Positions 3,590 to 46,700 are shown, counted from the stretch's first letter. The stretch: DNA of 64,000 nt from Pocillopora damicornis (GCF_003704095.1 NW_020846086.1:62001-126000), one strand, 5' to 3'. Numbers and translations are program-made. The notes: generated from the sequence alone by a model not told the origin.

Positions 3590-6500
3590 TCACTTCTGCA
3601 GGTCCTCGTAAAGTGGTATGAACTGCTTTGCGACTCTCTGTTTGTTCGAAGTGACCTTCAGCCATATCATCCCCATTAAGCACAATACGATAAGCACACC
3701 CAGCGAGGCTAAAACAGGCGCGTGGAAACCTGATGAAGGAAAAGTGAGAAAATCAAGATTAGCTTGATCGTGTTAGATCCTCGTCTGAGGAAGGTGGACC
3801 TTAAACAGAATGAGAGACACTTGTGGTGATGTTTCAAGCCAGTTATTGGGAAACTGATTGCTCGTTTGTCTAATCATCCGGATGAGAGTAGTCTTACAAC
3901 GGAGTTTCGTCCTTGACAAAGAGTTACTTATCAACACCCTAAGCTCATATCATTTTCATGAATCGATGGCAGCTGTTTTTAGGACCTCTCTCACCTAAAA
4001 GATTAACGAACACAATCAACTGTAACTCCTGAGCTAAAACCATCTGCCAAATAATACTTTTTCTCGATTTAAAATATATTTTGGTCTTCTGTCTAGATAA
4101 ATTTTCACCTCTCTGCTAGTAAATCCAAATGTTACAATGTGTTTACTTCAAATACTCGCCTGTTTTGAGTTTGAGCGTGTTCTTATCCAAGGCAACCGCT
4201 TCATCGACTTCTGCCTCCCTCTTATCGCGGTTCAGTGCGAGAGGACCCTGGGCCAAAGCATATATGTCATCCGGGTTGTCATGAAGGACCTTCTCGCTTC
4301 TTCGTCTTCTCTGTATGCAGCCTTGGGCACACCTTGAGGCAGGATCTGCGGCGTCACAGACCTGAACCTGGCAATGAAAAAACACATACGGGTGCTTGCT
4401 GACATATTGAAAGGCCTCAAGGCTCCAGCGCTGAGACTGGTTGCCGGGGCTGTCATGGAATTGAAGTGTGTCATCATCGTCGACCGAACACCTGAGAAAG
4501 TAATAAAGTAGGCTTAGTTTTGTAAACTTTGACGGCCACTAGTTCTAGGGTAAAACTCTCACGAGTCACTTCTCTTGATAAAGTTTTTACTTTTCTCTTT
4601 ACTAATAACTTCTGAGGTTTAGTTTTGTACGGTGGCCTTTAAGCGCCATTCTAAATAATGAAAAACAGTGGATATTAGTTTTGAAGCTATAACTAAGAAC
4701 CTAAAGCTATAACTAAGGATCCAAAGTTATAACTAAAGACAAAAGTTACAACTAAGGATCCAAATTTAGAACCACGGATCCAAAGTTTGTAAAGGTAACT
4801 TTGGATCCTTTGTAATGACTTAAACAACACGATCCAATTTTTTTTCATTCATGTAAAATGGCACTTACAGGCCATCGTCGTTTGATTACTTCATGAGAAA
4901 ATAGTTCGAGCGATTGGAGAGATACACGCCCTGTGATTGGTTTCAATGAATCAACGAATATTTTATTGAAGAAATGGAGGGAAGAATATTAGCACTCTTC
5001 CATGAAACTAGTAAAAGGATAAATGGTGTGGATTTGCCTTTCCCCCAGTGGACAAGTTGCGGGTTGTAGTTTTTATCGAGGAAAAATAAATAAAATTTAA
5101 AAAAAAAGGTACCTGCTGTTATAAACCACAAATATTACGAGAAATCAGTTATTCTTCTCATGCACAATTTTTCATGATACGGAAAAGTGTCACCTAGTCT
5201 CCGTCACTTTCAAATGGCGATGGATTTTTTTTTTGAGGCAAAACTTGAAAAGCTCTATAAAGTCCATTACTTTTAGACAAGCTTGCTGGACTTATGGCGC
5301 ATAATGACGGGTGAAATTTACATCATGAAAAATACCCACCCGTCTTTAATAATATCATATCTGGGCTGGGAATTCCTGTCCTGAGAGGGGGTGGCATAGC
5401 AGTCCAAGGCCAAAATTGACAATGTTGTGTCAATGGTGTCGACACGGGCTTCAAAGTACACTCGTTCACGGATTGTGAACTCGACAGGGAAGTCATCCTG
5501 AGAGAAGGGCGCAGTGAATCTGTTTGAACAAAAATGTGGAAATACGATTAGACCTTACCTCTCGTGCTGGAAAGCTACGTCTGTCGAGGACGTGAAAGTA
5601 ATTGTTGTTTTAGAAAAGCGATGTTCACACTTAGAAAAAACGTTATTGAAAGTATTTCTTCAAGGCATATGTTTGGAGATTTAGACACAATGTGGCGGTT
5701 AAGATTGATGATACATTGCATCAGAAGCAGAGTCTTATCAAAAATGCTTAAGATCCCTTTTTTAAATCAAGGATTATTGCGAAGATTTTACCATGAAAAT
5801 GTTCATTTTCCTGAATGGGTATTTTCTACAGAAAAGTTTTGTGCTTTTCCTCAGATTGAAAGCGAGTTTTTTTTTTAGTTATTGGGAAATAGCCCAATCA
5901 AATCCAATTACATTACAATTACTCATTTACTATTGTAAAGACTTGTCTTACTCTGGACTTCTGAACAAATCCAGACTGAGAGTGAACTTTCCAAATCCCT
6001 TTGAAGACAAAACAATCTTCGTGCTCGATGGTCTGATTCCAATGGAGGACACCACACCCCATTTGGAATAATAGCAGTGGAAGGGGATCATAGCATCGCG
6101 CACGCGTGTCACAATCTGGTTTTCTTTTATGGGGATTTCCGACACCATGTTGCTGTATATGGCATGATCCTTAGTATGCTTCAGAATTGTACCACATTCA
6201 TCGGTTTTGGTTTGAAGGAAAAAGTGAGTCTCGTTTTCAGTGGCTGTGCACTCTGGATCTATGAGCCTCAAATGCTCACGGTCTAAACCCAAAAGGAGAG
6301 ACTTGGGTAGAGTGATAGTCATCTCGTCCTGACCACAGTCTACTTCCACTCCTTCGGCTGTTGAAAAAAAGAACAGATTTCATTTCAAGGTTCTGCAGTG
6401 TTAAATCAAATGCCAAAAAGGACACAGACAGCATGAAGAATAAACTTGGAACCTTTATCGCCGAAATTTGGCTGCAAAATCAGGGTAATAATATAGCCAT

Positions 6501-11237: not shown

Positions 11238-14200
11238 TTACAACTCCCAGCGCTTATCATCTCTCATTGGTATGTCTGGTTTAGGGGCTGGTATGGTAGA
11301 TTTGTCATCCTGTATGAATGAGTAGTAATCTTCTGGCATATTTGTTGAAGCATTTAGGCAATCTTGGGAAAAGAAAAATATGCGTTAACAGGCTAATTCA
11401 AAGCGATCCTTGCAGTTATGAACACTACTCAATTAGTAGTGAAAATAAGGCCTGAAAAAAATTCAGGCCCGTACGGGATTTGAACCCATGACCTCTGCGA
11501 TACCGGTGCAGCGCTCCACCAGCTAACATAACAAGCCAACTGGGAGCTGCTTCTTATGTTGATTCCGAAGAAACCGTCGAAGTGGTGAATAAATTTACAT
11601 CCCGTTCTCAAGAAATCACTATTTAAAGACGGGTCATTGTTCTTCGCTGGGGGAGAGGGAAGGTAGGGTTCGAACAATTATGGGGGGATCACAAATGTGA
11701 TATGTGGTCGCCTCGTTAGCTCAGCGGTTAGAGCACTGGTCTTGTAAACCAGGGGTCGAGAGTTCAATTCTCTCACGGGGCTGGGCAAGTTTCCTTTTTG
11801 TCCTCTTCAAATAAAAAAAAAGTTTCAAATTATTGATATATTTGTTAGACTTAGAGTATGGTCTAAAACAATTATCTGATATTGTGTTAAGTTTTTTCAT
11901 TTGTGTGTCTATTTTTGGTGAAGGAGACTGCATTGATGGCGTGCTGTGATTGGCCAACAATTACGTCATATCTTATCCTAAATGCAGGGTGGCTTGATCA
12001 ATCCTCTGAGGCCCTGATTCTAGAAATTGTCTTCTGACTTCTTTTTCCTAGCCAATGAGAAAGCTTTATTAAACAAAAAACCAATCAGATTTTTAAATCT
12101 GCTTGTTTTAAGTTTGTTTTCAAGTAACCAATCAAATTACAAGATTTGAGAGACAACTTTTGCAAATTTTTTTATTGGGTCAACAAAATATTTGTGCGGA
12201 TTAAAAAAACTTGTATTTGAGTGGTTATTGGCCTCCTGGTGGAGTGCAATTTTGGTATAGAATTATAATTGTGATTTCAAATCAAACTCGCGCTGCGTGC
12301 TCGTTCGATTTTGAAAAAACGCATCAATTACCGTTATTCATCGACTGTAATCTCAATAATTGGGAGCTGAAAACATTAATCATCGTCTAAGGATTTTTCG
12401 GGGATCACATCAAGCTCCTCCAACCCCCTCCACCTCTTCCCCCAGGGCTGTAAATAATGATTAATCCTTGCATTATCGCAAGTGGCCGCCTCGTTAGCTC
12501 AGTGGTTAGAGCACTGGTCTTGTAAACCAGGGGTCGAGAGTTCAAATCTCTCACGGGGCTGAGCAGGCCTCCTTTTTGCTCACTTCAAATCAAAGTAGAA
12601 AACAAGTTTCCAATCACTGATAAATTTGCTAGATTTAGAGTATGGTCCAAAACAATTCTCTGATGTTGTATTTAAGTTGATTAATTTGCGTGTCTATTTG
12701 GTGAAGGAGACTGCATTGATAGCGTGCTATGATTGGTCAACAGTTGCGTCATATCTTGCCCTAAACGCAAGGTGGCTGTATCAATGAGAAAGCTTTATTA
12801 AACACAAAAACCAGTCAGATTTCTAAATCTACTTGTTTTGAGTTACACGATTTCAGAGACAACTTTTGCAAATATTTTTACTGGATCAACAAAATATTTG
12901 TGCAGACTAAAAAATCCTGTATTTGAGTGACTGGATTTTGTAACTTCAAATGAATTTAATAAAGCGGTTATTGTACTGAGTAGGTGCAATTTTGGGATGA
13001 AATTATACTTGTGATTTCAAATCAAACTCGCGCTGCGTGCTCGTTCGTTTTCGAAATAACGCATCCATTACCGTTATTCATCGACTATAATCTCGATATT
13101 TGGGAGCTGAAAACAATACGTACCTTGTTCATTTTCGTCCAGAATTCGTTCTACACACAGCCAGTCCATTAGATTTTCCTTTTGACTACTTAAGTACCAC
13201 TGCGTTATATCATCCTCATGGCTTTCCAACATATGAATACACTGAGAAACAAAGGGCATCAGATAATATTTAATCAAAAATAATTGTTAAAATGATAATA
13301 ATAATGCTGATAGTCCCTTGGACTTGATCCCATTTTTTTCATTCATTTATTATCAGCTAACTCGAACTCAGTGAACTGGAACTTCCTAATTTTACTTTCC
13401 TTGGCTCATATTTACCCTGATAACTGAACTTGAACTAAAAACGTCGTTCGATAAATGTAAAAATGTCAAAATAGTGCCGATTGAACGTCCCATTCTTTAA
13501 TCGCGATTGATATGGAAGTGATAGCTTGCATTTATGAAAACGTAACACATTTAGATAAATCTCCCAAACGATAGGTTCTTGAATAGAATCCTTTATGAAA
13601 TAAACTCAGTGTTTGAAAACGNNNNNNNNNNNNNNNNNNNNNNNNNNNNNNNNNNNNNNNNNNNNNNNNNNNNNNNNNNNNNNNNNNNNNNNNNNNNNNN
13701 NNNNNNNNNNNNNNNNNNNNNNNNNNNNNNNNNNNNNNNNNNNNNNNNNNNNNNNNNNNNNNNNNNNNNNNNNNNNNNNNNNNNNNNNNNNNNNNNNNNN
13801 NAGCTTGTACTTTTACAAGTTTCTTAATATGAATGATGGCGTCATGGCGCAATTAATCACATTTATTAGGCCGTCCGGCTCAGCTAAGAAAGCACTTCCT
13901 CGCTGATGTCAACAGATAACGAAAGACTACTTCTTGTGCCCGAGGGCCAGTGAGATGTGTCCTCTGTGTGTTCCAAATGCCAGAAATGATTGAAGATTAA
14001 ACACGCCATATATTCTTCATTGGGCATTCAAAACGCTAATACGCTCTGCGAATACTCAAGAAAAAACAGACTGTTTCGACCTGAACCCACTTCGTCCGTT
14101 TGAAACACTTTCTCCGCTCAGTGTGTGGATAGAGCGGTTTGACTGGCAAGTTTTGCCATTTGAAAAACGGCCTTTATTTGAGTTAATAAGAATTTTAGCC

Positions 14201-20475: not shown

Positions 20476-23400
20476 CTAAAACTCGTCAGCGTCTGCTAAA
20501 TTTGTTAATAAATAAAACAATCGTCTCTGCTCCAGAAGGTCATTCAAACTTCCTTGTTCAAGTATGCGCCCGTGGTAAATAAGAATAATGTAGTCTGCAG
20601 TTTCAATTGTTTGTCTCCGTCTTGTGAGTATGATACAGGTTTTATCTCGGCAAAGGATATCAGTGGCATCAGTCACAGCCTGCGGACCAAAATAGGTCAA
20701 TTCATCGTGTTATTTTACTTCTGAGGCAGTCATGAAACTCATTGGAAAACGCCGCGAGATTGGGAAGAAAACTGGCCAACCCTCTGACAGACTGACCGAC
20801 CGACTAACAGACTGAATGACTAGCTGGTTCACTGACTGACTGAACAACTGGGTGAGTTACTAAATGCCTGACTGAATGCCTGACTGACTGAATGACAGAC
20901 TGACTGACTGACTGACTGACCAACTGACTGACTGACTGACTGACTGACTAGCTGGCTCACTGACTGACTGACTGAATAACCTAAATGCCTGACTGACTTA
21001 CTGAGTGACAGACCGATTGACTGACTGACTGACTGGCTGACTGACTGACTGATTGATTGACTGAATGACAGACTGACTGACTGGCTGGCTGGCTCGTTGA
21101 CTGTCTAACGACTGACTGGCTGGCTCGCAGACTGACTGAACGACTGACTGGTTGACTGACTGGCTGACTGAGTATGAACAACCGGACAAAGGAACTGACT
21201 GGCTGGTAATAGGACTAATTGACTGACTGTTTACGTGATTCACATAGGTGGACGACTGAGTTAATGAATGACTGAATGAAAAAATGGACAATAGATGAAC
21301 GCATTGATGAACGCATAATCTAACAGTCGTTCGTTCTAATCTCTTTCCTTAAATATAATCATAATACCTGATCTTCTTCTTCCAGCTCATCTAAAATGAT
21401 GATTGGCGATTCTCGGATAATTGCCCGTGCTATAACGATCCTTAGTTTCTGACTATCGCTCAATTTGATTTGATCTTCATCAGGAATTGTTTCATAACTC
21501 TAAAACAGACAGCGAGAACGAACCATTGAAAAGGTTGAAAAATGAATAACTTATCTCCATATGGAGCTATTTTTCAAACCTTTACTTTTTACATGATTAC
21601 AATCAATGAATCAGGAAACTAATGAATCACTATCAACGATAGAAACGCAGACGTTGCTATACCACATTCCTCAAACTTTGGCAAAAAATTAAAAGAATTT
21701 AGTTATGCTAACCGAAGACTTTTGGAGAACTGATGTTTTACAGTGCTTATATAGGGAGGAACACTTTCTTTTATCTCTGCTTCATTATTTCAGCCTTCTA
21801 TTTTATTGGCTCGAACGCAAACAATTGTTCTCTTTTGAAGATCAACTCTAAGTATTTGTCACTCAAACTGTAGCAATCTGTACGATTTAGTTGATCAGTT
21901 CGTTACCTTTGGCAAATCCACGATAAATTCGTGTGCATACGCTGAATAGGCAGCGTCCTCAATTTCCGTTTGTGTCACGAGCCTTCCTTTGTCGCCATAA
22001 GCAATATTCTCAGCAATACTGTAATGTGACAGGAAACATCGATGGGACACTACTGCATGATGGGATCGTAACCAAGAAAGATCCAGATTGCGAATATCTG
22101 CTCCATCTAAAAGCTAAAACGAATGCAGAGTTAAAAACGTATATTCAAACGAGCCCTAATCGCTATAATATATGATAGACGACGCTGCGGGCAAAGGAGA
22201 ATTTAGTATACACCATTAACTACAGAGCAAGCTTAGTTAATTGAGGGACGCATTCAGGAAAATAGAGGTGTCCATTTTATGAAGACAACAGATGATAAAG
22301 TCGTAAGAAAATGTTTTCAATCAAGATCAAAGACTGCGTCCATTGAATAAGGCAGTTTATCCTTTTAAGATCTGCTTTCGTGCTGTCGCTCTTGTTGCTG
22401 GTTTTTTTGTTTGTTTGTTTGACTGTTTGTTTGCCTGGCGCGGGACGGGATTTGTCGATGATGCGTTCAAAAAAGCAAATAACTAACATTTTGTTGAAAG
22501 AAGATCACTGAATGGAATTTTTTAGCTCCATACAAATATATGAGGCAAAGTTACATCGTTTAGAGAAGTGTTTATTGTAAACTGTAAAATGAAGTTATGA
22601 TGTTTACCAAGTTTCCCTTGACAGGATCAAAGAAACGCTCCAATAAAAGTTCAAATGGATTCACTTTATCGCTGTCCAGTTGAACAATAGCCAGTTTTTG
22701 TCCACTGCTGACCCTCACGCTCAGCTGGCTCAGTAACGGAGCGTCGTTATGGAGTGGATCTGGAAGTTCAACATGTTTAAACTCCAAGTTTCCTTCAACC
22801 TCATCCTGCGTGAAAAATTACTTTAGTTTAAAAACTTTCAAACTCTTCTGATACCAATAACCAGACTTTTGATCGCACGTTTATTCTGTTATTCATATAT
22901 TTAAGTGATTCCTTACAAAATCTTTTTTTGGTAAAACATAAACAACTTTTTCCATTTATTAAAGCATCTCTTAACTTTCATGCATGACATCTCGGTTGGA
23001 AACTCTTTAGTTCACTTGCAAATCAAAGGAACGAGGCAGAAAGATTATTGAAGCCTCATTAACTAATGGTAAACTCACAAATTAATCAATGTAAAAGCTC
23101 ACCAACTTGTCACCAATGTGATCTTGCACGTCTAGTGACTCGTCGTCAAAGAGTCTGTTCAGCGAATCTTCATTCTCTTCATGCGCGTGGGACGGCGCTC
23201 GTGAACTTGACGTTGCATACGAACCAAACAGTACAGTCATTAACACTCTAAAACAAAAGGAGAAATATTTTTATCACATAAACTGCGGTGTTATACAGGG
23301 ATTTCCAGCTCTGAGAAAAGCCACAACAGCACACGTGAAAAAAAATCGTATTTTTTCACGTGTGGTGATATAGCCAATCGGCTGCTGACACGTCACTCGC

Positions 23401-29400: not shown

Positions 29401-32400
29401 AAAAAAAGTTTACCTGAGCTCAGATCCTAAATAATTCTTAAACTGCACAATACGATGGAGAGGCTTGTCTCACCAGTCTTCAATAATTTCTCTTGGTGTA
29501 GCGTCTGAGATTCAAAATACTGAAAAAGGAACAGTTTTAAGTGTCTTTAAGTTAACAAGTCGTAAGTTATTAAATATTTCCTTAGTTTCTTTTAGAGACC
29601 TAGAGAGATTACACCACAGCCTCCTTTGCACCGAGTCGTTCTTTGAAATGTCGCGTAAGGGAGCGGTGCGTAACAACGCATAGAAGTAGGCCGACTTGAC
29701 CAACTTTCCTTTTCTTTCTTTTTTTGCATCGTCCAACTTTCTGGTTATCGATATTAACATGAAGAAAAGGGGGAAAATGTTTCAGAACTACCAGGAACAT
29801 ACAACTCCAGGTACAGAAAGCTGACATAAAACCCAACTAACGTCAACTGACCTGTAAAGCAGCCAGATATCTGAATGCCCCTCCTGACATCGTAAGTTCC
29901 TTGGGACTCCCTTGTTCGATTATCTCACCATTATGAAGGACAACAATAATGTCTGCTATACGCGCTACGGACACGTGACTGGTTGAAATTACCGTGGTGC
30001 GGCCAAGCCTTGCCTGAAACGTTACACATTTTATATAACAAATTGAGAAGGAAAAACCTATCATACCCAGTATTGATTGACTCTCCTTTATTTTCATTTA
30101 TATGGAATTTATAATTCATGCTCTTTGCTACGTATTTTACCATCACGCTGAGGATAAAACAGGATATTTATTGACGCTATCATTTTTACTGAGATCTGAT
30201 TCGTCTTACTTCTATACTTTCATTGTAAATTAGGTAGTGTGGTTTGTTATAGTGTCAGGCAACTCGTGTTTTTGATATTGTAAAGAAAAGTTACAAGTTA
30301 TAATATTATGAGAGTAGAAGGGTAAGCTTCAAGAGGTAAACCAAGTTTGTGCGTGAATAGTTTGATTTGTAAAACTGTGGTGTTTACATTAGAGTAGAAA
30401 TAAAGTTGATATTAAGGAACGTACTTGGTTCAAGTAGTTTGTCAAAGCATCAAGGGCAAAGTTGTCCATGATAGACAAGTCTTCCTCCCACAACAATATC
30501 CGAGGATTTCTGATTAATGCTCGTGCCAAAGCTATTAACTGTTTCTGATAAGAAGTCAGCGGAGATCCGTCATCACCTACCACCGTAGCGTATCCCTGGA
30601 TTATAAGCAAAATAGTTTTCCTCCATCATTTGATGGAATTATTACTCCATTTGCAGAAAACAGAATAAGGAAGGTGATAAACTCTTGGCACGGTCGTCTA
30701 ATTTTCAGGAGCATAGGACATTGACTATTTTTTATACTTTACTCAGAGCTTTGACGCTTTCCTCTTTGCCAATCAGTATACAGACAGCATGTTACATAGG
30801 AACCTTGTATATTCCCTAGTTCACTATCGTTTTCCCTGGCTCAGTGGTTGAACATCGCAGGGCCAAATCCGAAGGCCTGGAGTTCGTTTCTTCGAATTTC
30901 TTTATACCATGCCCTCACAGAACAAGTGAAATATTTTCTACGTCATAGAAATGTTTGAAAATAACTTGTTTCACTTACGTGTGGCAAAGTTAAGATGAAT
31001 TCGTGCGCCCCAGCCACCTTTGCAGCGCGCACTATTTCTTTCAAAGTGGCTTCACCTTTTCCGTAAGCAATGTTATCTGCTACTGACGTGTTAAAAAACT
31101 CAGGTTTCTTGTGGACGATGCCAATTTGCCGGCGATACCAGCGTCGATCAAGAAAACGAACATCTTGCCTGTCGAGTCGCACCTTGTAATGTGAAGATAA
31201 GGTTAGCATAAGGTTAAGCTTATCAAAAAACCTTCGCGCGGGGTCGTACGATTCATTAAAACAATACTACTTATTCTGGGTTGGATGCCAAATGTATGCG
31301 TCACAGAAGGTTCCCACGTTGAATTAAGATTGCTCACTTAACCATAATTCTTTACTTACAAACCTGAAAAAAAGGTCAAACACGTTATTTATGCAAGAAA
31401 AAGTGGTATTTCTCCGCGAACATTAAAATCTGGAATGTCCGACACCGATACCAAACATTTTCAAGCGCACTACGCCTCCGGTATACTTAAGACAGATATG
31501 TCAAGCCAAAACGCGAACAGAGCGGGAAATTCAACGGCTGAAACGTCAAATTAGTGCTTTCAGATCGCGCAGAGACAAAAAGAAGGTTTTTTGAAAAGGG
31601 AATTATGGCCATCTTTTGAGACTCGTAAACCTACTTTCCCAGTTTGTGGATCATGAATTCGCTGGAGCAATTTTATCAACGCGCTCTTTCCGCTGCCCTT
31701 GTCTCCTAACAGAGCAACTGTCTGATTCTCTTCCACTGTGAAATTGATGGATTTAAGGACCTGTGCAATAAAGTAAGAGAAAAATTCGTGTGTTCTTCAA
31801 TTTACAAACACGAGTCAAAAATAAGAAAATCGTTCAAAGAAAAATCCATTTAGATGACCTAAGGTGTTACGCAAGCAGTTGACGACAATTTCTTTCTTTT
31901 ATCTCTCTTTTTGCAATTAACGAAAGAACTTCGGGCAAACAGCATACCCTTGTTTGACATACCTGATATTCAGGTCGAGAAGGATAATGGAAGTACACGT
32001 TAAACACATCCAGTTTGCCAAGAACTGTGTCAAGCTGACTAGTGGCCTTGTCAAAGGGGTCTTCATCGGTCTAGGAAGGAAGATAAAAACCTCGCCATTA
32101 TTTTGCTCCAAATGTAGTGCCATGCATCGCCACGGAAAGTTGCGTGAACTCTGTGCGGCATCTCAGAGGGTACTTTGCCACATCTTCTTTGAGTTTGTGT
32201 ATCTTGCGTGGAGGCTCTCTTTAGTGCGTAGCCTGCGCGTTTCGAGCGATGTTAGTGCGCGAAAAGTCCTGAAACGAAAATGTCTATGCGACATCTCAAG
32301 TAGTGAATATCATAAGAGTATTAGAACCTGTCTCATTACCTCTGAGATTCCAAGCAATGATGATAACGCCGTCCTGGCGTCACCGATATCTTCAAGTTGC

Positions 32401-35400: not shown

Positions 35401-37778
35401 TCCTCAATTCTGTCCTGTATCAAGCGGCAAGATCTCGTGATGTTTCTTAGCGTGTAGTTTACGTTATTTGTTTCAGGTAGGATTGTGGGTGTGGGAGCCG
35501 CAGGTAATTTCTTAATACTCTGGACTTGACCAACATTAATGCCGTCATCGGAAAACTTTTGATTGGTTTCTCTGTTTGTTCTATTTGACGGCTGTACTGT
35601 TGATTTCTTGTCAATTACGTTCCTCTCGGTTTTTTTTCTTGTGTTATCGGAATTCATCTTCATTTTAGACTCACTTTTCTCTCTACGATATGCTTCCATT
35701 GAAAAAGGCTTGTATGTTTTCCTTGTTTCCTCATGCTTGCCGACAAAATGTTTCTCGAAATCCAATTGAGAATCAACGACAGGTTTAGAAGTTTTACCTT
35801 CGATGAAAACTTTCTTTCCATAAGACTCAAGTTCTCGTTTAGTTTTCCTTGAATTTCCAAAGCCCTCTTCCATTAATTGCTTTTCCGAACTTGCGTAACC
35901 TAATTGGTTACTGAAAATGTCAGCCTCACGTTTGAAATAAAAGAAACTTACATGACTTTCTTTCCCATTTTTTTTAAGAGAACTTTTCATTTCATGTTTT
36001 CCTTCATTAAAATGACCGATGATTTCCTCTCCTTTTGCTTTACTTGTTTCTTCTTCTTTCGTTATTTCGTTTAAAAACGCTTTCTCTTTCAACTTAACCA
36101 TTTCAACACGCGTTCCCATGACAATAATTCCCATCAACTTTGTTCCGTTCAAAGCAGTGCCGTTTAGAACTACTGAAGGAGATGTTGCATTATTTTCATC
36201 AAGAGCCGATTTATGCTGCAGTCTTCCATTCAAACCAACAACCTTCACTCTAATTCCAGTCTCGTTTACTATCACTTGAACAGACTTTGTTTTTGTGGCA
36301 TTTATAGCTGTTAACCCACGGGGCTGAACCATTTCCAAGGTCACCACATTCCTTAGCAGTAAATTTGTAACGCTTTCGTTTAGAGTACAATTCCAGTTTT
36401 CGCGGATGACAAGCTCGTCATTAAGTTTTCCATAAATCATGGCTCCCAGAGAAGGTATCAAGCCGTTTGCAACCGCCATGAGGGACCCACATATCATAAG
36501 AACTTGAGAGACAAGATCTGAAACAAACTAACGATTGTGCAGGGCAATGAATCATACTTCAGTTTTTTTTCCTTTTTCATTATTAATTACCGTTTTCAAT
36601 TGAGCGTCAAAAGTTCACGCTCCAATTAGCATTGGCCTTACATCACTATACTGTGTAATTGGTCTGTAGAACTTGAGCCATCTCAACTAACTGATGGAAA
36701 CTTGGAACAATCACAACTTGGTCTCTCGCTTTTCACTGCATATGTGATTATTCACCTGTTTCTACACTGATTTCTCACTAGCTCCTTTGAGCATTTCTAA
36801 TCAAAGCCAAAGGCTCTGCTCCAAAATGAGATAATAACCGATTCTTGCAGTCAGTGAGTTTTTTAAATATGAACAAGCCTTACTGACCGAGCGCCACTTG
36901 CATAGGAGTAATGAATATGGATCGCCACAAGGTCAGTGTATCATCAAAATACGACAGGTCCACCGTGATTTATCAAATTAAACAGGTCAAGTGAAGAGGT
37001 GTTAGACCGATTTTTCATGGAGAGGGCGTCGTAACGAGAAACCAAAGTAATTATAACGGCCAAACATACCAGAACAAAGGTAAATTTAAAAAGGAGATAA
37101 TTACATCCCATAGAAAGCCACTCAACTGCTTCGTCAAACGATGGAAATCAGGAGTGATTGGGTTTTCGTTGGCATGTGATGAGGTCGAGAACGAAGCGTG
37201 TTTTCTCTTGACCAATCTCATCCCGTAAGGTAAAAAAAACCCCACAGCAATCCCGATGTTCGAATAATAATCGCTCCACCCATGCGTCAGTGATCCAGGT
37301 TTCTCTATAAGAGTAATCTTTATCATAATTAACTCGAGGTTTGGCCGATTAAAATTCTTTTCTGTCGAGCTATCGAGCCCAGCAGTATTATGTTATCAGT
37401 TTAGAGCACACTTCTCTTAATAACAAAGAAAACATTTGACAATTTGGAGATGCATTTGATCGAACCCACGCCAACAAGATTCTGAACTAGCCCGATTAAC
37501 TCGTTTAAAACGCAAAATGGATCCAGCCGCCAAACTTGACTTATCAATTTGTTTGACAGCAGGCAATAATTAGTTGTTGTTATAACCCAAATTGTATGAT
37601 CATTTAACCAAGGAACCAAATTGACTGTCATAAAACCCACTTGACAGGTTCATTACCCGTAGGTTACATCTAGGAAGCTTCCAGTAACAGAAAAACTTGA
37701 GCTTTGAATTGGCAAACTGAAGAGAATTAAAGCTCTTACCTTCCCCGGTTTGTTTTCCTCACCCTCAACCATTGTCAT
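20476..37778 (-). CDS. ABCB1/MDR-family full-length ABC protein (TMD-NBD-TMD-NBD) with degenerate NBDs and two giant insertions; 5' end uncertain
   Basis: About 25 collinear exons. TMD1: 35194-36517, ~34724-34923 ([14 protein letters not shown]), ~34170-34291, ~33169-33287, ~32641-32695, ~32339-32451. NBD1: ~31963-32070 (FHYPSRP), ~31634-31759 (GDKGSGKS), ~30979-31182, ~30426-30596, ~29852-30013. TMD2: ~28009-28107, 27486-27563, 26195-27409, 25822-25899, ~25144-25332 ([15 protein letters not shown]), ~24128-24268 ([10 protein letters not shown]), ~23103-23247. NBD2: ~22608-22805, ~21908-22111, ~21368-21499, 20476-20679. The ATG at 37778 and the linker exons are tentative. Confidence 0.85.
20780..21280. 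repeat. Degenerate (GACT)n microsatellite in the last ABCB intron
   Basis: Long imperfect ACTG/GACT array. Confidence 0.9.
25926..25989. repeat. Perfect 32-bp tandem duplication
   Basis: GCCGTTACTTTCAATTTTCTTAACTTCAAGCG twice, just upstream of the acceptor of ABCB exon 25822-25899. Confidence 0.9.
28700..28870 (-). mobile_element. Decayed tRNA-derived SINE
   Basis: Minus strand begins GAGCAGGGATGGCACAGTG.., followed by a degenerate B-box (GGTACGATTC). Confidence 0.4.
33420..34062. repeat. Compound (GACT)n / TATTACTGACGACTG repeat in an ABCB intron
   Basis: GACT array interspersed with a recurrent TATTACTGACGA unit. Confidence 0.9.
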
Positions 37779-39388
37779 CTAAATAACATTTTCTTCGAAC
37801 CCGCGACTAAACCTCGTCATATTTTGATCTCCTTAACCTTGGGTTCAAGGAACCCACCGCGATCTCCCCAAAGACCAGCTCCCTTAAACTCTGACTATTC
37901 TGAATCAGCGAATTCCAAGCGATCTAAGTTTTACTACAATTTGTTGTTCAAATTTTTGACAGGTTTTAACACCTTGGACTGTAACCAAAACATAATAAGC
38001 AAACAAAAGCAATAATTTTTCATCCAGCAGGTCATAATTCATTGATTGCGCGGGTGCGAAAACTTCAAACTAATAACAAATAGACCTACGTTTGTACGTT
38101 GACAAATTATCTAGTAATTTGTAACGACAGCGTCTTTGTACTTACCCGAGCCAACCATTCAATGTCCTCGGAAACGTGCCTTAAATCAGACATGTGAAGG
38201 AGAACGTACTATTATGATAAAAATTCTCAGAAAAACCAAACTTAACTTGACTCAGTTTTTCTGTTCGGAATCAAAAATTTACTCCAGCGTAACGTTACGT
38301 CTCAGAAGCTGCCAAATCCCTTTACGAAGATTTGAAATGTTCTCTCTTTGCTTAAAATCTGACTCGATTCAGGTACTAAAAATGCTATATTTGACGGACT
38401 CGGTGTTGTTCAGATACTTTCAATGGAATTGTTTATCTAGATCCCCGCTGCTCGATTAGGTGCCCCACTAAAATTTTTTGCCCTACCAGCAATCTCTCTT
38501 TGGTGGAAAATGTCACGAAAATTCGCTGAAAGCTAAGAAATTTTATCTCAAAGAACAATCGAGTATTTTAAAGTCATGACTTCAACTCGCTATATGTGCG
38601 TTGTAAGTAAAAGAGATTTTTGCTTTTACTACTATTGGCCCGTTGTAAGCAAAAATAAATGGAAGTTCGAATATTTACATTCGGGTAAAAGGTTGCGAGG
38701 CTTTCAACGCAACTTGGCATGGCTTTTCGTCTCCCAAACAATGCCCTATTAATGACTCAAAGAGTGCACCAAAAGGAAACATCGCCAATAATCTTGAGGA
38801 CATAACCAACGTTTTTTTATAGTGCCTCAACTGCATTCATTGACGAACTCTAAATTAATTAACTTCATCTTGCCCCCTGTAGGGAATATTTCAATTCACA
38901 GCGTGATTAATCCAGCACCAGCTCTTTGTTCAAAGTAAAACATGGCAGCTGCCAGATATTAGGTGCGATACACCTTGTATACTGAAACAGTAAATTGCGT
39001 TAGCCTGCATAGCAGGCGTAATTTTGACGAGTGAGTGCTCAGTACCTTCTTGACGAAAATTATGGCCGCCCTCTTTGATGTAAATGGCCGCGGAAGGGTG
39101 AGGAGAGAAAGAAATTTGTACCAAGGGGGCTGTCGTCGGTCAAAAATATGGAGAGAGTAATGGTGAGACACCACATTGTTAATGTTAAAAAAATTTCACC
39201 AAGCAATTGAGTTTATTGTCCTGTTAGACCAGTTTTAGATTTCTTTCACTTTTACTTATTTCTCAGAAAAAAAAAGAGAATTTTAAAGACGCTCTTATAA
39301 TGTTTTGTTAATCTCAGCCTGAACGTTCTCATGGAAAAGGCTCTTATATAAAAACAAGTGTGTAACTCACCGTTTCAGAATAAGCTAA

Positions 39389-40742: not shown

Positions 40743-43700
40743 TTATTGAATGTCTTGAACAGCCCGTTTCTTAGATCTCGGTGATTGCCAACGTCCCCTC
40801 AGAGCCTGCACTACGACCGACGTGACATCCGTCAGGCTGTGGTGCGCCTCAAAAATCTCCTCACTTGACAATGCTTGTAAAACATCAGGTGATGCAAGAT
40901 CTTTAAGGGAACGTAAACAGTTACAAAACCTCTCTTTATCACTGTCTCCTCCGATAGATGTCGTGGAAGCAGAGGAATGATCAGTACTCTCCTGAGCCAC
41001 CACAACCGTTTCTTTAGGTTTGGTTCCCTTAATGTTTATATCCCCTGCATCTCCCAAATCTTTCTCTCCAAATTCCACATTTTCTTCTGGATATGACAGC
41101 ATTACGTCGGTTCCTTTACACTCTTCGCGCGATTCTTCACGTGGAAATGGCTCCATTGGTTCACAACGAGTTTCAACTTGAGGGCGAGAAATTTCAGCGG
41201 TCGCTTCGATAATGTCAGAGTCATGCGCAGAACGACATGACCCCGTGGTGCTCGCCTCCATCCCCGTCTTATTTGCTCGTGCTTCAACAGTGAGTAGATC
41301 AATCACTTTTTCATCATCGACGAAGACAATTTCCGCTTCGCTTCCCTCTGGCCTCACATCGGACGCCATTTCTTCGGTTTCAACAACCAGTGCTAGATCG
41401 GTTTTATTCGACGAGCAATCTTCACTGGGTTTAATCCCTTCCATCTTAGACTCCACAGCCGTTTGCGTACTTTCTGTGCCGCCGGAATTCAGAGGGTCCT
41501 CAATTACAATACCAGCCTCTCCTGGGAAATGCGCATGTTCAGAGGTGGCTACATCTTCTGTTGCGAAGAATTAAGAAAACACGTTACTACGCTGGTCAAA
41601 ATATAAATTACACCTAGAATTGTAGGCTTCGCATACTGTAATTAGTTTTTGCCTTTGTTCTATCTGAGACTAGAAGGGATTGGGCAGGTGAAGGCATTGA
41701 AAAAGTTAAAAACGAAATTTTTGGAAGCAACAAAGAGAAACTGAGACCTTCATTTTTCTTGGCTTCCTAAAAATACAATGAGACAATTTGTATTTACAAA
41801 CGCTGTGAGAATGTGGTAACAACACCAGACATACTAAAGAACGAAGGTCTACTTTAGAGTTAAGTTGAGTATTACCCAGAAAACCTTTCACACACAACGC
41901 TTCTTTTGAGATAAAACTAAAAATAAAACAAAAGATTAGATTTTTCTCAGTCGGATAAACCCAACAGCATTTACAAATGATGACATTTGAAATTTCTTCC
42001 CAATCCTTTATGATTTATTAGGGCTAAAGCTATCATAAATTATTTGTACAGACTTGCAGCTCTCATTTCCGGTAATCCATTTTACTGTAGAATCTTTAGA
42101 TTACCTAACTGGATCATGGGACTACTCTCACCTTCTTTGTTTTCATTCTCTTCCTTCTGAACAACTTCTGCCGTTAACTTTGCCACAGTAGATTTGGAAT
42201 TCCTCCCTCTTTGAATTTGATGGAATCTTCTTAAAGCTGTCTTCAGTGTTGGTACTTTGGGTGATTTGATGGGTAGGTTTTTTACCTGAAAAATTACCTC
42301 TTTTAGCTTGTCTTGTCATCTCGTGAAACTCAGTTGTCCTTATTTATATAAGGTTTGTAAAAACCTTGTGTGACAATTTCGGCGAAAGCTACGGAGCCCT
42401 TTTTCAAAGAAGTTCCACTCTCTACGTTGTGAAAGGAGCATGTAACTTTTACGGCCGGTTATTTAAACAAAGTTTAGCCGTTGTTTAACAAAACTGCGTT
42501 CTAAACTATCGTCAGTTCCGCTGAACCTTTTATCTGAACATTTAATTTTGTGAAGAGTGTCATGAGGGGCGAAAACTAACAATGGAATGAAATTTATTGA
42601 ATCAGATCAACCCTCTCATAGAGAATCCCTGAGGCCCACTGCTTGTGTGAAAACGCGGTTTGGGTTAGACCTCGTTTAAACGACCGGCCCTAAGAGTTTT
42701 TACGATAAGCTGACTTATACATGTACACGCATTTTGATCGGTTCTTCCTTATGATCTATTGTAGGACATTAACAACATTTTACTTTTTCTGTCACATAAA
42801 ATAAATAGCTTCCATATTGCTGTGGGTCTTTACGCCAACAGATCACAGAAGACCTCAAAATGTGGTAAAAACATCAGTGACACACTTGGCTGTGCATCAC
42901 GAAAAACTTTTTTTGTTCTCACTACTGGTAGCACATTGATTGAAAGCCCCGATGTACGACTTTTCTGAAGCAAGTAACTAAAACACAATGCATTTCTGGT
43001 GGCTCTGTTTGTATTACCTGCTCCTCTTTCAAAGCTGACAAGTTTCCAATGGTGTGAATATTCTGCGCACGCACCAAGTGACCCATACCACGTGACCAAG
43101 ACATGGTGAGAATGGAGGGAAGAATCTGTTCAACTGGCACTGTGCAAGACACAAGATCTGGGAACATGCAGTCGGTGGAGTCCTGGGCACTATGGGCGTT
43201 GCTCGATGGTAAAGGTCTCCGCTGAAAAGGATTTAAAAAAAAAAAAGGAAGTAATTTAGTGATTTAGTTATGAGAATTTCAAAATTTGATGTTAGATCAA
43301 GGTAATAACCTGTTTACTGGATAATGTATAGATAGAAGAAGGAGAAGCTACTTCTAAATAATTTCTGGGAGTTAAAGGGAGTTACGTACTTGCTTAACAG
43401 CCGTGAATGGAGAAGAGCCCGATGTTTTAAGGTGTGAAGCAATGGTAGTTAGTTCAGCGGTTTTTTCTTGCAAGTCTTCACAACTGTCATCTTTAACAGG
43501 TAGAGCAAACGAAACTCTTCTGACCTTGATAATCAAAATAACAAACAGAAAAAGCACAATTTGGTTAGCGCATGAGACACACAACACAGCAACATCATTT
43601 GCTGATTAATATTCACTAGCAAAAACAGAAAGATCGCTTAAACCTTGCTTTTTTCGTTCGTTACAAAACAAAACCTAAGTTTTGAATAAAACAGTTCTTG

Positions 43701-46700
43701 TCAGATGGGTTGACAACTACCTAGAATCGAAATAAGTTCTAACGATAATCAGAAATATTTTAAAATTCCGACGAAGTCGTCCTTGAAAAATAAAAAACGA
43801 GAAAAATATCGACTCAAGAAGAAATGGTGGAATTTCACTCTTTAGAAATTAGGCCGTTGAGGAAAACGCTCTCCTTTACCAATTGACAACACCTGAAAAT
43901 ACTAGATGTGCAATAAGATAAATAACTACATTAATTATTACTACCTTTCCGGGAGGGGAGGGCGAGTCAACTCCTTGCTTGATCGCATGGTATCTTTTCA
44001 AAATACCAGTTGTGGGAGAAACTCCCGGGGAATTTCTTCCGCGGAGATTCAATCGACACGGACTACCCCCTGCTGCAAATGGACGAAGGAACTTGCTCTT
44101 AGCGTTTAAGACTGGAGACGAGGTTTCATCCCTCGTTACGCCAGCGACAAATGGCTCAGCGGGTTTCTCCATGGGTGTTTGGTCATCCAGCTTTTCAGTC
44201 TCTGCCAGTTGCTGACCACTGAGCATAATTCTGCTGATCTCTTGCTCTGTGGGCTCTTCTTGTGGTTTTTCGAGCGTTGGCGTCATCTCGATCTTCTGTT
44301 GAAGTTTTCTTCTCGTTCGCCCGGCAACTGGCGAAACTTTCCTCTTAGTTATTGGTTGTTCTTCAACTTTCATAGGCGAATCAGAGTCGAAAAATTTATC
44401 TTCTTTCAGAACATCACTCTCAAGTTGCGTTTCCAATGCCGTATCAACGTTTTTACCATCAGAATTCCCTAAATTATTCTGCTCTCTTTTCGAGTTTCTC
44501 TGAATACTTGCCCTTGTTTGAATTAAACCCGGTAGAATGGAGTCGGGCGGGATCGTGATTTGTCTAAGGGACTGAAAAGGGGACTCAAAGCTTGGCGTTT
44601 GTGACGACGGTATGACGTCAGGTGACATCACTTCGTCATCACTGTCCACCTCATCTTTATCAGTTTGCTCTGTTTCGTCGCGCAGGTTTCCATCTTCATT
44701 TTGGGAAGATTCCACTAATTCGACAATTTCACATTCTATTCCTTCGACCTCTCTATCGGCTCCTTCACTGATCTTGTCTTCCATTTCTACCCCATTTTCT
44801 TTTGAGTCTTCGCCATTATCCATATTTCTCCCAACTTTATTTTCCGTTGTTGCCCTTTCAATGGCCTCCGCTTTGTTTTCGTTTTCGCTCTCGCTTTTTC
44901 CTGTTCCTCGCACATTTGAGCCAACCTGGAGCTCTTCCTCGTTCTGACAGACCAATTGTTTCTTGCTACCAGGCGACTGAGGTTTTTCTTCTTCTACAAA
45001 GGGGAAGAGAGAAAACACATTAAACAATTTTTCAGTCGATTGTAGTCTCACGCTATTAGTCGCCCCTTGCTACCGGAACTAATTTTGCTTCCATTATTCT
45101 GCTCAAAGCAGCTAAGAGTATTACTAATCCTCTGAATGGAATGCCGCTAGGTCCACAAATTCATCAAAATTCCTTAACAGTTTCCTGATTCCGACTGATA
45201 CTCTTGGGCAGAGAAGGGAAATGTAAGAATTAAGCATCTTGTCCAAAAGTACAACGATATGACACGGCCGGGGTTTGAATCCGGACCTTCCAATTTGGTT
45301 TACAGTCCGCTGACCACTAAATCTCCGCGCCACACTAAACAGTAATGAAACACTAAGTTTGATTGGCTGATTAGGAGAGGATTCAACAAAAATGCTGGAG
45401 TTTCATTAAGTTTTAAAGTAAATGGCAAAAAAGGCAGTGCAGAAGGCTAATGGAAGTTCGTTTTTTAACATAACGTCATTAATTTCAGAGTAAGTAGGCG
45501 GCGATTTCGTTTGACATCCAAGGAGAATTCCACCGGTTGCCAGCTCTCACGGAAACCCTTTAAAATCATCCATAAAAGAGAAGCTCACCTGGTGAACTGT
45601 TTGGAGTCGTGTCACCACTATATGGGAGAAATGAAAAAAAGAGATTCTTGGTTATTGTGACACCTCACACTGGCCTACAAGAAGGAAGGAATGGATACTC
45701 ACGTGACATCTCCATGTGACGTAAGAGTGAACTGTGAAAATTGTGAGCAGTCTTGTGAGTGGTCAAGCGCATTGTAGAGTGCAGGAACATCACTGTAGTG
45801 AGGAATAAAAAGGATACAAATTATCAAGGGTCCAATGTGCTAAAAATAGGTGGTATATTTCATATGTTGTGAAGGCTCACGTCTGTTAAGTCTGATTTTT
45901 TCAATTTTTTCGATAAAAACTTCATCATCGAAGAGTCCGATTGATACTCTGATTATTACCTTGTAAAATTAAGGGTTTACTACCAAGGTAACAAAATTAT
46001 ACAGTACTGAATAATAATAACAAAAACAGGGTACAGGGTGTAAATTGAATTACATCCACAAAGTGTTTCTTCGTCCATTGATTCAGAGTCGAATTTGAAT
46101 TTTGGGTGTTAGGTTTCGAGGAAGAAGCAGCGGAGAAAAACCCTCAGAGCAAGGACGAGATTCAACAACAGACTCAACCCTCATGTGATGTCAGATTTGG
46201 GAATAAAACCCCCTTCATCGGGAGGCACGAGCTCTCACCATTTTGCCAACCCAACTCCCCATCCCTTGACCATCCCTGTTCCTTATAAATAACGTGTACC
46301 ATGAACATTTTGCCCGAGTCTAATTTTACGGATTAACGATTTATCATGTTCTGCAACGACTTATTTCTAACCAAAATTTCCGATCGGATCGATTTTTTTT
46401 AAAATGAAAGTTCCAGAAGCTAAATATTAATAAGCACGAAATATAAAGTAATTTTTTCAACCATTTTCTCTGGTTTACAGCAGAGATTTTGCACTGGATT
46501 CCTTCAAATCCTCGAGAATAATACATCCCTACCCAAAAAGACTGACATTAAAACGACATGAAACAAAAAAGAAAATACCCGTATCCCTTCCCACATCTAG
46601 AGTTTGCTTGTTTGTTTGTTAAAGTTTTTCAAGGGATTAGCGGGGTTTTATATTACAGATTTGTATCATTCAAGTTTCACAGCCTTACAACTACTTTTTA

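Follow-up and report, generated by a model that had tools for sequence, protein, structure and literature searches.

ATP-binding cassette (ABC) exporters are defined by ATP hydrolysis, and the known non-pumping members (CFTR, SUR) as well as the asymmetric pumps keep one working site. In ABC exporters two composite sites are built from the two nucleotide-binding domains (NBDs), whereby site 1 consists of the Walker A and B motifs, the Q-loop, and the H-loop of NBD1 together with the signature of NBD2, and site 2 is composed conversely. CFTR, SUR1/2, TAP1/2, ABCB11, TmrAB, and TM287/288 are asymmetric ABC proteins with one degenerate site, in which one consensus hydrolysing site is kept, and in SUR and CFTR the exporter fold serves as a regulator or channel. 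Here, we describe an ABCB-type gene on the minus strand of a 64,000-nucleotide stretch from the coral Pocillopora damicornis (GCF_003704095.1, NW_020846086.1:62001-126000; in the following "the window"). The gene is transcribed, spliced, and open, and at each of the catalytic motifs its orthologues share the residues that replace the canonical ones. It probably represents an old, conserved, non-hydrolysing ABCB "pseudo-transporter", which would bind ATP at NBD1 and would not carry out ATP-driven transport.

Family Assignment and Motif State of the Two NBDs

The analysis was carried out exon by exon, whereby canonical paralogues from the same genome served as a control for this way of reading. 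Between 20.4 and 37.8 kb, stop-free segments encode, in this order, a first transmembrane domain (TMD1), NBD1, a linker, TMD2, and NBD2, which is the TMD-NBD-TMD-NBD order of an ABCB full transporter with type IV exporter fold, and the Pfam domains ABC_membrane and ABC_tran matched on single exons. The best similarity was found to ABCB1, ABCB4, and ABCB11: for three NBD exons, ABCB4, ABCB1, and ABCB11 were the top matches in the PDB (E from 1e-31 to 1e-12), and the motif positions aligned without indels. A search of the assembly (234.35 Mb in 4,393 contigs) showed a single copy of the gene. Elsewhere, the genome matched only at two ABCB loci with canonical motifs (contigs C1383 and C2202), which are 38-50% identical, have their NBD exon borders at the same residues, and carry the motifs GESGCGKST or GSSGCGKST, VSQEP, LSGGQ or ISGGQ, LLLDEATSALD, and IAHRLS. 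By architecture, best matches, and intron positions the gene is assigned to the ABCB family, and its descent from a full transporter of the ABCB1/P-glycoprotein type (TMD1-NBD1-TMD2-NBD2) would be the best explanation for these features.

NBD1 starts with an exon (31963-32070; RNA joint on the donor side, phase 0) that carries the A-loop FHYPSRP with its aromatic Tyr, which is invariant in the orthologues. The adjacent exon (31635-31760; RNA joints, Pfam ABC_tran E=1e-7) contains the Walker A sequence GDKGSGKS, which agrees with GxxGxGK[ST]. The Q-loop exon (30979-31182; RNA joints, PDB alignment to ABCB4/ABCB1 with E=9e-31) reads IVHKKPEFF compared to VSQEPVLF, so that SQE is replaced by HKK, VSQEP by VHKKP, and the Gln by Lys. 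In the exon for signature, Walker B, and D-loop (30425-30595; RNA joints, PDB alignment), LSGGQ is changed to LTSYQ and the canonical Walker B/D-loop sequence ILLLDEATSALD is replaced. Here, Walker B reads ILLWEE, with an Asp to Glu exchange and a retained catalytic Glu, and the D-loop SIMD retains S..D. The H-loop exon (29852-30013; RNA joints) was aligned to the canonical paralogue with TTIVIAHRLS and has STSHVS in place of IAHRLS, which is an exchange of His for Ser. A rescue by a "shifted" His was ruled out, since the His adjoining the H-loop position varies to Tyr, Gln, or Arg in other lineages.

The losses in NBD2 include the P-loop. In the exon 22608-22805 the A-loop FRYPTR is replaced by ELPDPL (ELPDPLH; paralogue alignment), and the Walker A motif GSSGCGKST is replaced by QLDSDKVNP without any indel in the PDB alignment, whereby this segment aligns to the canonical LALVGSSGCGKST. 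The Q-loop exon (21907-22113) reads VVSHRCFL compared to IVSQEPIL in the canonical paralogue, corresponding to a change from VSQEP to VSHRC and from Gln to His; VVSHR is identical in the orthologous loci L003-L005. Orthologue and paralogue alignments of the exon 21368-21499 revealed the signature LSDSQ instead of LSGGQ, a canonical Walker B IIILDE with both the Asp and the catalytic Glu, and an acidic D-loop, LEEEDQ. In the last coding exon (20476-20679, stop codon 20476-20478) the H-loop IAHRLS has become LTRRRQ, with Arg in place of His.

Compared to a competent ABC ATPase, a Walker A motif is thus present in NBD1 and missing in NBD2, LSGGQ is missing in both NBDs, and so are the Q-loop Gln and the H-loop His. 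The pattern hhhhD followed by the catalytic Glu appears as ILLWEE in NBD1 (ILLWED in the orthologue L021) and in canonical form in NBD2. No fully consensus composite site, as it is found in asymmetric ABC proteins, is present: site 1 lacks the Gln of the Q-loop, the His of the H-loop, and the Asp of Walker B and faces a non-consensus partner signature, and site 2 is devoid of Walker A, the A-loop aromatic residue, the Q-loop Gln, and the H-loop His. All motifs that an earlier prediction from the window sequence (hereafter the original prediction) had quoted were found again on the minus strand in their places by PDB and paralogue alignments. Its statement that both ATPase sites are degenerate is confirmed, but has to be qualified insofar as the catalytic Glu and the D-loop S..D persist in NBD1 and the Walker B Asp-Glu in NBD2.

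Conservation of the Degenerate Motifs and Selection

Orthologues were available as exon-sized open reading frame (ORF) fragments and as long contigs, which came from coral-type assemblies and from metagenomes of corals. Collinear orthologues that share the degenerate motifs lie on at least five other coral-type contigs. In four long loci (L003, L004, L005, and L006/7) each exon is collinear with its counterpart in the window, and all nine motif regions compared are in the same state as in the window (NBD1 in L003-L006, NBD2 in L003-L005). For each motif, at least 10 orthologous exon sequences carry the same degenerate residues. The signature/Walker B exon of NBD1 is represented by 16 further sequences with 64-97% overall identity and the invariant pattern DGSPLTS.Q...L.LARA..R.P.ILLW.EDLS.MD; LTSYQ and ILLWEEDLS[IVL]MD are present in 17 of 17 exon sequences, save for LTSFQ in two of them and one exchange of Glu for Val. 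The H-loop exon was found in 11 further sequences and reads TTV[IV]STS in all 12, whereby two of them have Tyr or Gln at the position of the adjacent His. All orthologues have HK[KNR]PEFF at the Q-loop, and their NBD1 P-loop reads GDKG[SC]GK[ST], or GEGGCGKST in the distant L021. For the "Walker A" exon of NBD2, to which 16 further sequences were assigned, the P-loop is absent in 17 of 17; the consensus is LAIVPLDNEK.NPFE, and LA[IV]V.L.... is common to all. The NBD2 signature/Walker B exon reads L[ST][DGE]S[QL]K and I[IV][IV][LI]DELE[EQD]EDQ in the orthologues, with LSDSQ, LTGSQ, and LTESL as signature variants, and the H-loop reads TC[IL]I[LF]TRRRQT in L004 and L005. The more distant L021, with 67% NBD1 identity, has HKNPEFF, LSPYQ, ILLWEDD, and STSRVA together with the kept P-loop and A-loop Tyr; thus, the degenerate state is older than the main group. 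In L022, another distant lineage, the A-loop is kept. The contigs P0001, P0003, P0004, P0009, and P0020 (2.7-8.4 kb) end short of the NBD motif exons.

The ratio of nonsynonymous to synonymous substitution rates (dN/dS, omega) was calculated according to Nei-Gojobori on exact exons for comparisons among the window and L003-L006. It amounted to 0.05-0.08 for NBD1, 0.055-0.12 for NBD2, and 0.06-0.10 for the TMD exons; in the least saturated pair, L003-L005 (dS 0.6-0.8), the values were 0.062, 0.120, and 0.069, respectively. Strong purifying selection acts on the two NBDs as well as on the TMDs. Identity to the window is 82-85% in NBD1, 80-84% in the membrane domains, and 70-75% in NBD2, i.e., NBD1 is conserved as much as the membrane domains and NBD2 less so.

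Transcripts and Gene Model

Part of the region 26150-32100 is covered by ten RNA runs, which belong to metatranscriptome studies of corals and of marine samples, and contigs of four runs from three studies were placed on this 5,951-base stretch. They contain 12-13 joints, all of which read CT..AC on the plus strand and therefore GT..AG for a gene on the minus strand. Spliced contigs from poly(A)/oligo-dT RNA were found in three studies; they show transcription and splicing, not the level of expression. One contig, with 6,915 nt, extends past 26193 by 2,488 nt on the lower side and past 31760 by 2,222 nt on the upper side. Across the 12 exons joined by RNA, from 31963-32070 down to 26195-26460, 771 codons are open, and all 12 have AG/GT ends and one phase once the cut offsets are applied, whereby the acceptor end of the exon 31963-32070 was derived from the loose end of an RNA contig that runs into the upstream exon. 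We infer that the remaining nine exons, from 25822-25899 down to the stop codon at 20476-20478, constitute the 3' part of the gene, because they have GT-AG ends and a consistent phase, correspond to collinear exons in the orthologues, and show NBD borders as in the canonical paralogues. In one RNA contig of run X5, position 31180 is joined straight to 31961, which would be an in-frame skip of the 126-nt NBD1 Walker A exon; this is a weak observation, with 28 letters on the shorter side.

The interval 20476-32070 thereby comprises 21 exons with GT-AG borders, whose phases agree and which run to one terminal stop codon, and encodes NBD1, linker, TMD2, and NBD2. The original prediction of an intact gene without internal stops is borne out by this model, and the transcripts that it had proposed to look for exist. 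Its extent has to be revised: position 32070 is exactly an exon start, but the same gene continues upstream to approximately 37.8 kb with TMD1. This upstream part (32340-37778) was assigned on the basis of Pfam ABC_membrane, orthologous exons, and the RNA contig overrun, with exon boundaries inferred by junction enumeration, and the first coding exon is probably located near 37740-37778. Short blocks conserved in L003-L005 are present at 37689-38196 on the minus strand, e.g., ...VQGVKTCQ at 37956-38021 and another one at 37740-37778, and these could represent the first coding exon, promoter-proximal elements, or both. A start "MKKEKK..." at 36577 was dismissed, as it lies in a different frame that overlaps a conserved exon and coding conservation begins at 36527.

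Downstream of NBD1, the linker is encoded by two exons (29474-29519 and 29251-29387) with RNA joints and consistent phases 1/0. TMD2 begins with three exons that are likewise delimited by RNA joints and are 55-100% identical to the orthologues (27486-28483): these correspond to transmembrane helix (TM) 7 (28343-28483), TM8 (28009-28107), and the cytosolic extension of TM8 (27486-27563). After the Gly/Pro-rich insertion described below follows the exon 25822-25899, which is entered by the loose end of an RNA contig, is 81-92% identical in L003-L007, and would contain the region of coupling helix 3; its translation corresponds to FDDPKNTTGALTTRLANDAAQVKGA of ABCB1. Four further putative TMD2 exons (25144-25332, 24668-24768, 24128-24268, and 23103-23247) have GT-AG ends, matching phase, no stop, and orthologous exons with 69-97% identity. 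A candidate exon at 25396-25497 was dropped, as it has no orthologue match and the flanking exons of L003 and L005 are just 93-115 nt apart.

Two Inserted Regions

The 1.33-kb TMD1 exon at 35194-36527 (minus strand) contains an insertion of approximately 345 aa in extracellular loop 1 (ECL1), for which no match was found in the C1383 and C2202 paralogues. The insertion has many N-x-[ST] sites and an invariant Cys pair (exon residues 47 and 367), and most orthologues have a basic cluster of the R-x-[KR]-R-like type (RKTKR, RKRR, RKKR, KKRRRR), which may be a convertase cleavage site. Its middle part is variable; L004 lacks it, and in P0002 little of it is left. The dN/dS of this exon is 0.12-0.27. 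An AlphaFold2 prediction of the exon from an 11-row alignment yielded a small beta module and a disordered middle at a poor mean predicted local distance difference test (pLDDT) score of 42. An all-against-all HMMER search with the 1.3-kb exon returned ORF fragments only and no annotated full-length protein.

The second insertion, of approximately 347 aa, is cytosolic, rich in Gly, Pro, Ser, and Gln, and located directly before coupling helix 3, the coupling helix of NBD2. It is encoded by two exons (26635-27409 and 26195-26460) that were delimited by spliced RNA contigs, and contigs of three runs show that this Gly/Pro-rich ORF (26.2-27.4 kb) belongs to the spliced mRNA. The 174-nt intron 26461-26634 (minus strand) inside the ORF is removed by splicing; since it is in frame and stop-free, its retention would preserve the reading frame. 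An unspliced contig over the upstream junction of this intron (26431-26654) was present in a random-primed RNA run. Between the same flanking exons, the orthologues have ORFs of 456 aa (L004:12532-13902), 348 aa (L005:12852-13898), and 1337 aa (L006:8673-12686), so that the length varies greatly. The 348- and 456-aa ORFs match the insertion of the window by tblastn, and no tblastn match to it was obtained for the L006 ORF. Constraint on the insertion is weak, with a dN/dS of 0.34-0.44. Among the listed differences between RNA and window, which are a small sample, 8 synonymous and 4 nonsynonymous ones fall into the core exons, and 4 synonymous and 16 nonsynonymous ones into the insertion; 16 further variants stand outside these counts.

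Proposed Mechanism and Alternative Explanations

The motif states fit the proposal, already made in the original prediction, that site 1 may bind ATP without hydrolysing it and that site 2 is dead, with Tyr and P-loop present in NBD1 and neither in NBD2. In addition, the same degenerate residues in orthologues and an omega well below 1, which the prediction had named as support for a conserved non-catalytic function, were both found (dN/dS 0.05-0.12 on both NBDs). Composite site 2, formed by Walker A/B of NBD2 and the signature of NBD1, has neither the P-loop nor the aromatic residue of the A-loop and would therefore be unable to bind ATP. Composite site 1, formed by Walker A/B of NBD1 and the signature of NBD2, probably still binds ATP via the conserved Tyr and GxxGxGK[ST]. 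Turnover at this site is probably absent because of the exchanges of Gln for Lys in the Q-loop, His for Ser in the H-loop, and Asp for Glu in Walker B, and because of the partner signature LSDSQ. In this case, ATP would serve as a ligand with a structural or gating function and not as fuel, as it does at the degenerate site of CFTR, SUR, or TAP. The actual work might be done by the conserved membrane domains, the ECL1 ectodomain with its predicted glycosylation, and the fast-evolving cytosolic Gly/Pro-rich region by the NBD2 coupling helix. The protein could serve as a receptor or a scaffold, regulate another membrane protein, or form a pathway that is passive or gated by ATP. Judging from the strong constraint on the TMDs and on the folds of both NBDs, it appears to require its entire four-domain body, and the two added regions point the same way.

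Several points weigh against a non-hydrolysing protein. The Walker A Lys/Ser and the catalytic Glu of NBD1 are kept, as is the Walker B Asp-Glu of NBD2, and a slow or unorthodox ATPase at site 1 would be possible. Furthermore, dS is saturated in most pairs (1-3), and thus the omega values are rough; the NBD motifs compared in distant lineages are those of L021 NBD1 and the L022 A-loop, leaving out L013, L014, and the rest of L022, and NBD2 exons are known from three other long loci and short ORF fragments only. It could therefore be that the protein is an ATP-driven exporter with one unorthodox site, in which the NBD1 Walker A Lys and the Glu-Glu pair are used and other residues replace the Q-loop Gln and the H-loop His. 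This would be in line with the conserved P-loop, A-loop Tyr, and catalytic Glu of NBD1, with a constraint on NBD1 that equals that on the TMDs (omega 0.05-0.08), and with the conserved coupling-helix regions. However, four of five catalytic elements of site 1 are changed, other lineages have Tyr, Gln, or Arg in place of the His by the H-loop position, even the catalytic Glu is replaced by Asp in L021, and the partner signature varies between LSDSQ, LTGSQ, and LTESL. In known ABC exporters such a site is non-hydrolytic and depends on a second site of the consensus type, and the coral protein has none. Overall, we consider an unorthodox exporter unlikely, although it is the strongest competitor of the explanation favored here.

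Neither NBD might bind ATP at all, with the NBD folds being kept as structural or interaction modules in a nucleotide-independent protein. Site 2 has no P-loop, and the degenerate segments of NBD2 are themselves conserved, so that constraint need not imply nucleotide binding. Such a protein would nevertheless be hard to reconcile with the perfect GxxGxGK[ST] motif and the stacking Tyr in NBD1 of every lineage seen, including L021, as both are difficult to explain without a nucleotide, and this alternative appears even less probable to us. The joint loss of many catalytic residues could also hint at a transcribed, decaying pseudogene or a young ABCB1 duplicate whose NBD motifs erode neutrally, and the fast Gly/Pro-rich insertion (dN/dS 0.34-0.44, 16 nonsynonymous versus 4 synonymous RNA variants) would agree with this. 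Yet all 21 exons are free of stops and frameshifts with introns that are all GT-AG and in phase, spliced RNA is present in three studies, the same replacement residues are fixed in many orthologues at dS >1, and both NBDs evolve at a dN/dS of 0.05-0.12. As the gene is also single-copy and just 38-50% identical to its canonical paralogues, neutral decay is hardly credible. Among these explanations, a conserved protein that binds ATP at NBD1 without hydrolysing it is therefore the one that we favor.

Surroundings of the Gene in the Window

Long (CTGA)n/(TGAC)n microsatellites are present in two introns (20784-21171 and 33427-33952) and are the reason for "SQSVSQSV" pseudo-ORFs in the ORF lists. 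Downstream of the ABCB gene, a 133-aa ORF at 5948-6349 (minus strand) matches Pfam ZP-N (E=8e-17) and is probably an exon of a neighbouring zona-pellucida-domain gene. On the upstream side, two acidic/Ser-rich ORFs of 237 and 391 aa are located on the same strand at 40743-41456 and 43876-45051, respectively, for both of which no Pfam match was found. Both probably belong as exons to another gene, since only approximately 70-120 nt of the 6.9-kb RNA contig remain upstream of the modelled coding exons, and these would be 5' untranslated region. The window contains a run of N at 13622-13801.

Comparison With Known Systems

A full-text literature search in a limited collection yielded neither a full-length ABC exporter described as degenerate at both sites nor this coral gene. 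The "ABCB4-like" gene LOC107340542 of Acropora has been reported to carry 20 nonsynonymous differences that are fixed between two species and lie mostly in the NBDs (PMC6505131); this gene may or may not be an orthologue of the one described here. We would give about even chances to the wider view that this is the first full-length ABCB protein with neither site catalytic, old and found coral-wide, in which purifying selection has preserved both NBD folds, the ATP-binding NBD1, and the TMDs, and which was rebuilt as a receptor, a scaffold, or an ATP-gated rather than ATP-driven pathway, with a glycosylated, possibly convertase-cleaved ECL1 ectodomain and an expandable, disordered Gly/Pro-rich arm. 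If this is true, the exporter fold would have a selectable use without a power stroke, and one that has been conserved for long, given that synonymous sites are saturated between the lineages. Structural biologists would obtain a natural "dead" relative of P-glycoprotein. Such coral genes are probably annotated as "ABCB1/ABCB4-like multidrug transporter" and counted as chemical defence or stress markers, which is probably wrong for this gene.

With the type IV exporters ABCB1/P-glycoprotein, ABCB4, and ABCB11 the coral gene shares the four-domain order, the best PDB matches, and the Pfam domains. It differs from them in that both composite sites are without consensus motifs and in its two insertions of approximately 345 aa in ECL1 and approximately 350 aa in the Gly/Pro-rich region, the latter possibly reaching 1,300 aa in one orthologue. 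Site 1 resembles the degenerate site of the asymmetric ABC proteins, as the P-loop is kept, the H-loop His is lost, and the partner signature is deviant, whereas the second site differs from theirs by the absence of Walker A, the A-loop aromatic residue, the Q-loop Gln, and the H-loop His. In this combination of a conserved catalytic fold, purifying selection, and replaced catalytic residues, the protein is similar to pseudoenzymes, e.g., pseudokinases, and this likeness would imply a binding, scaffolding, or allosteric role.

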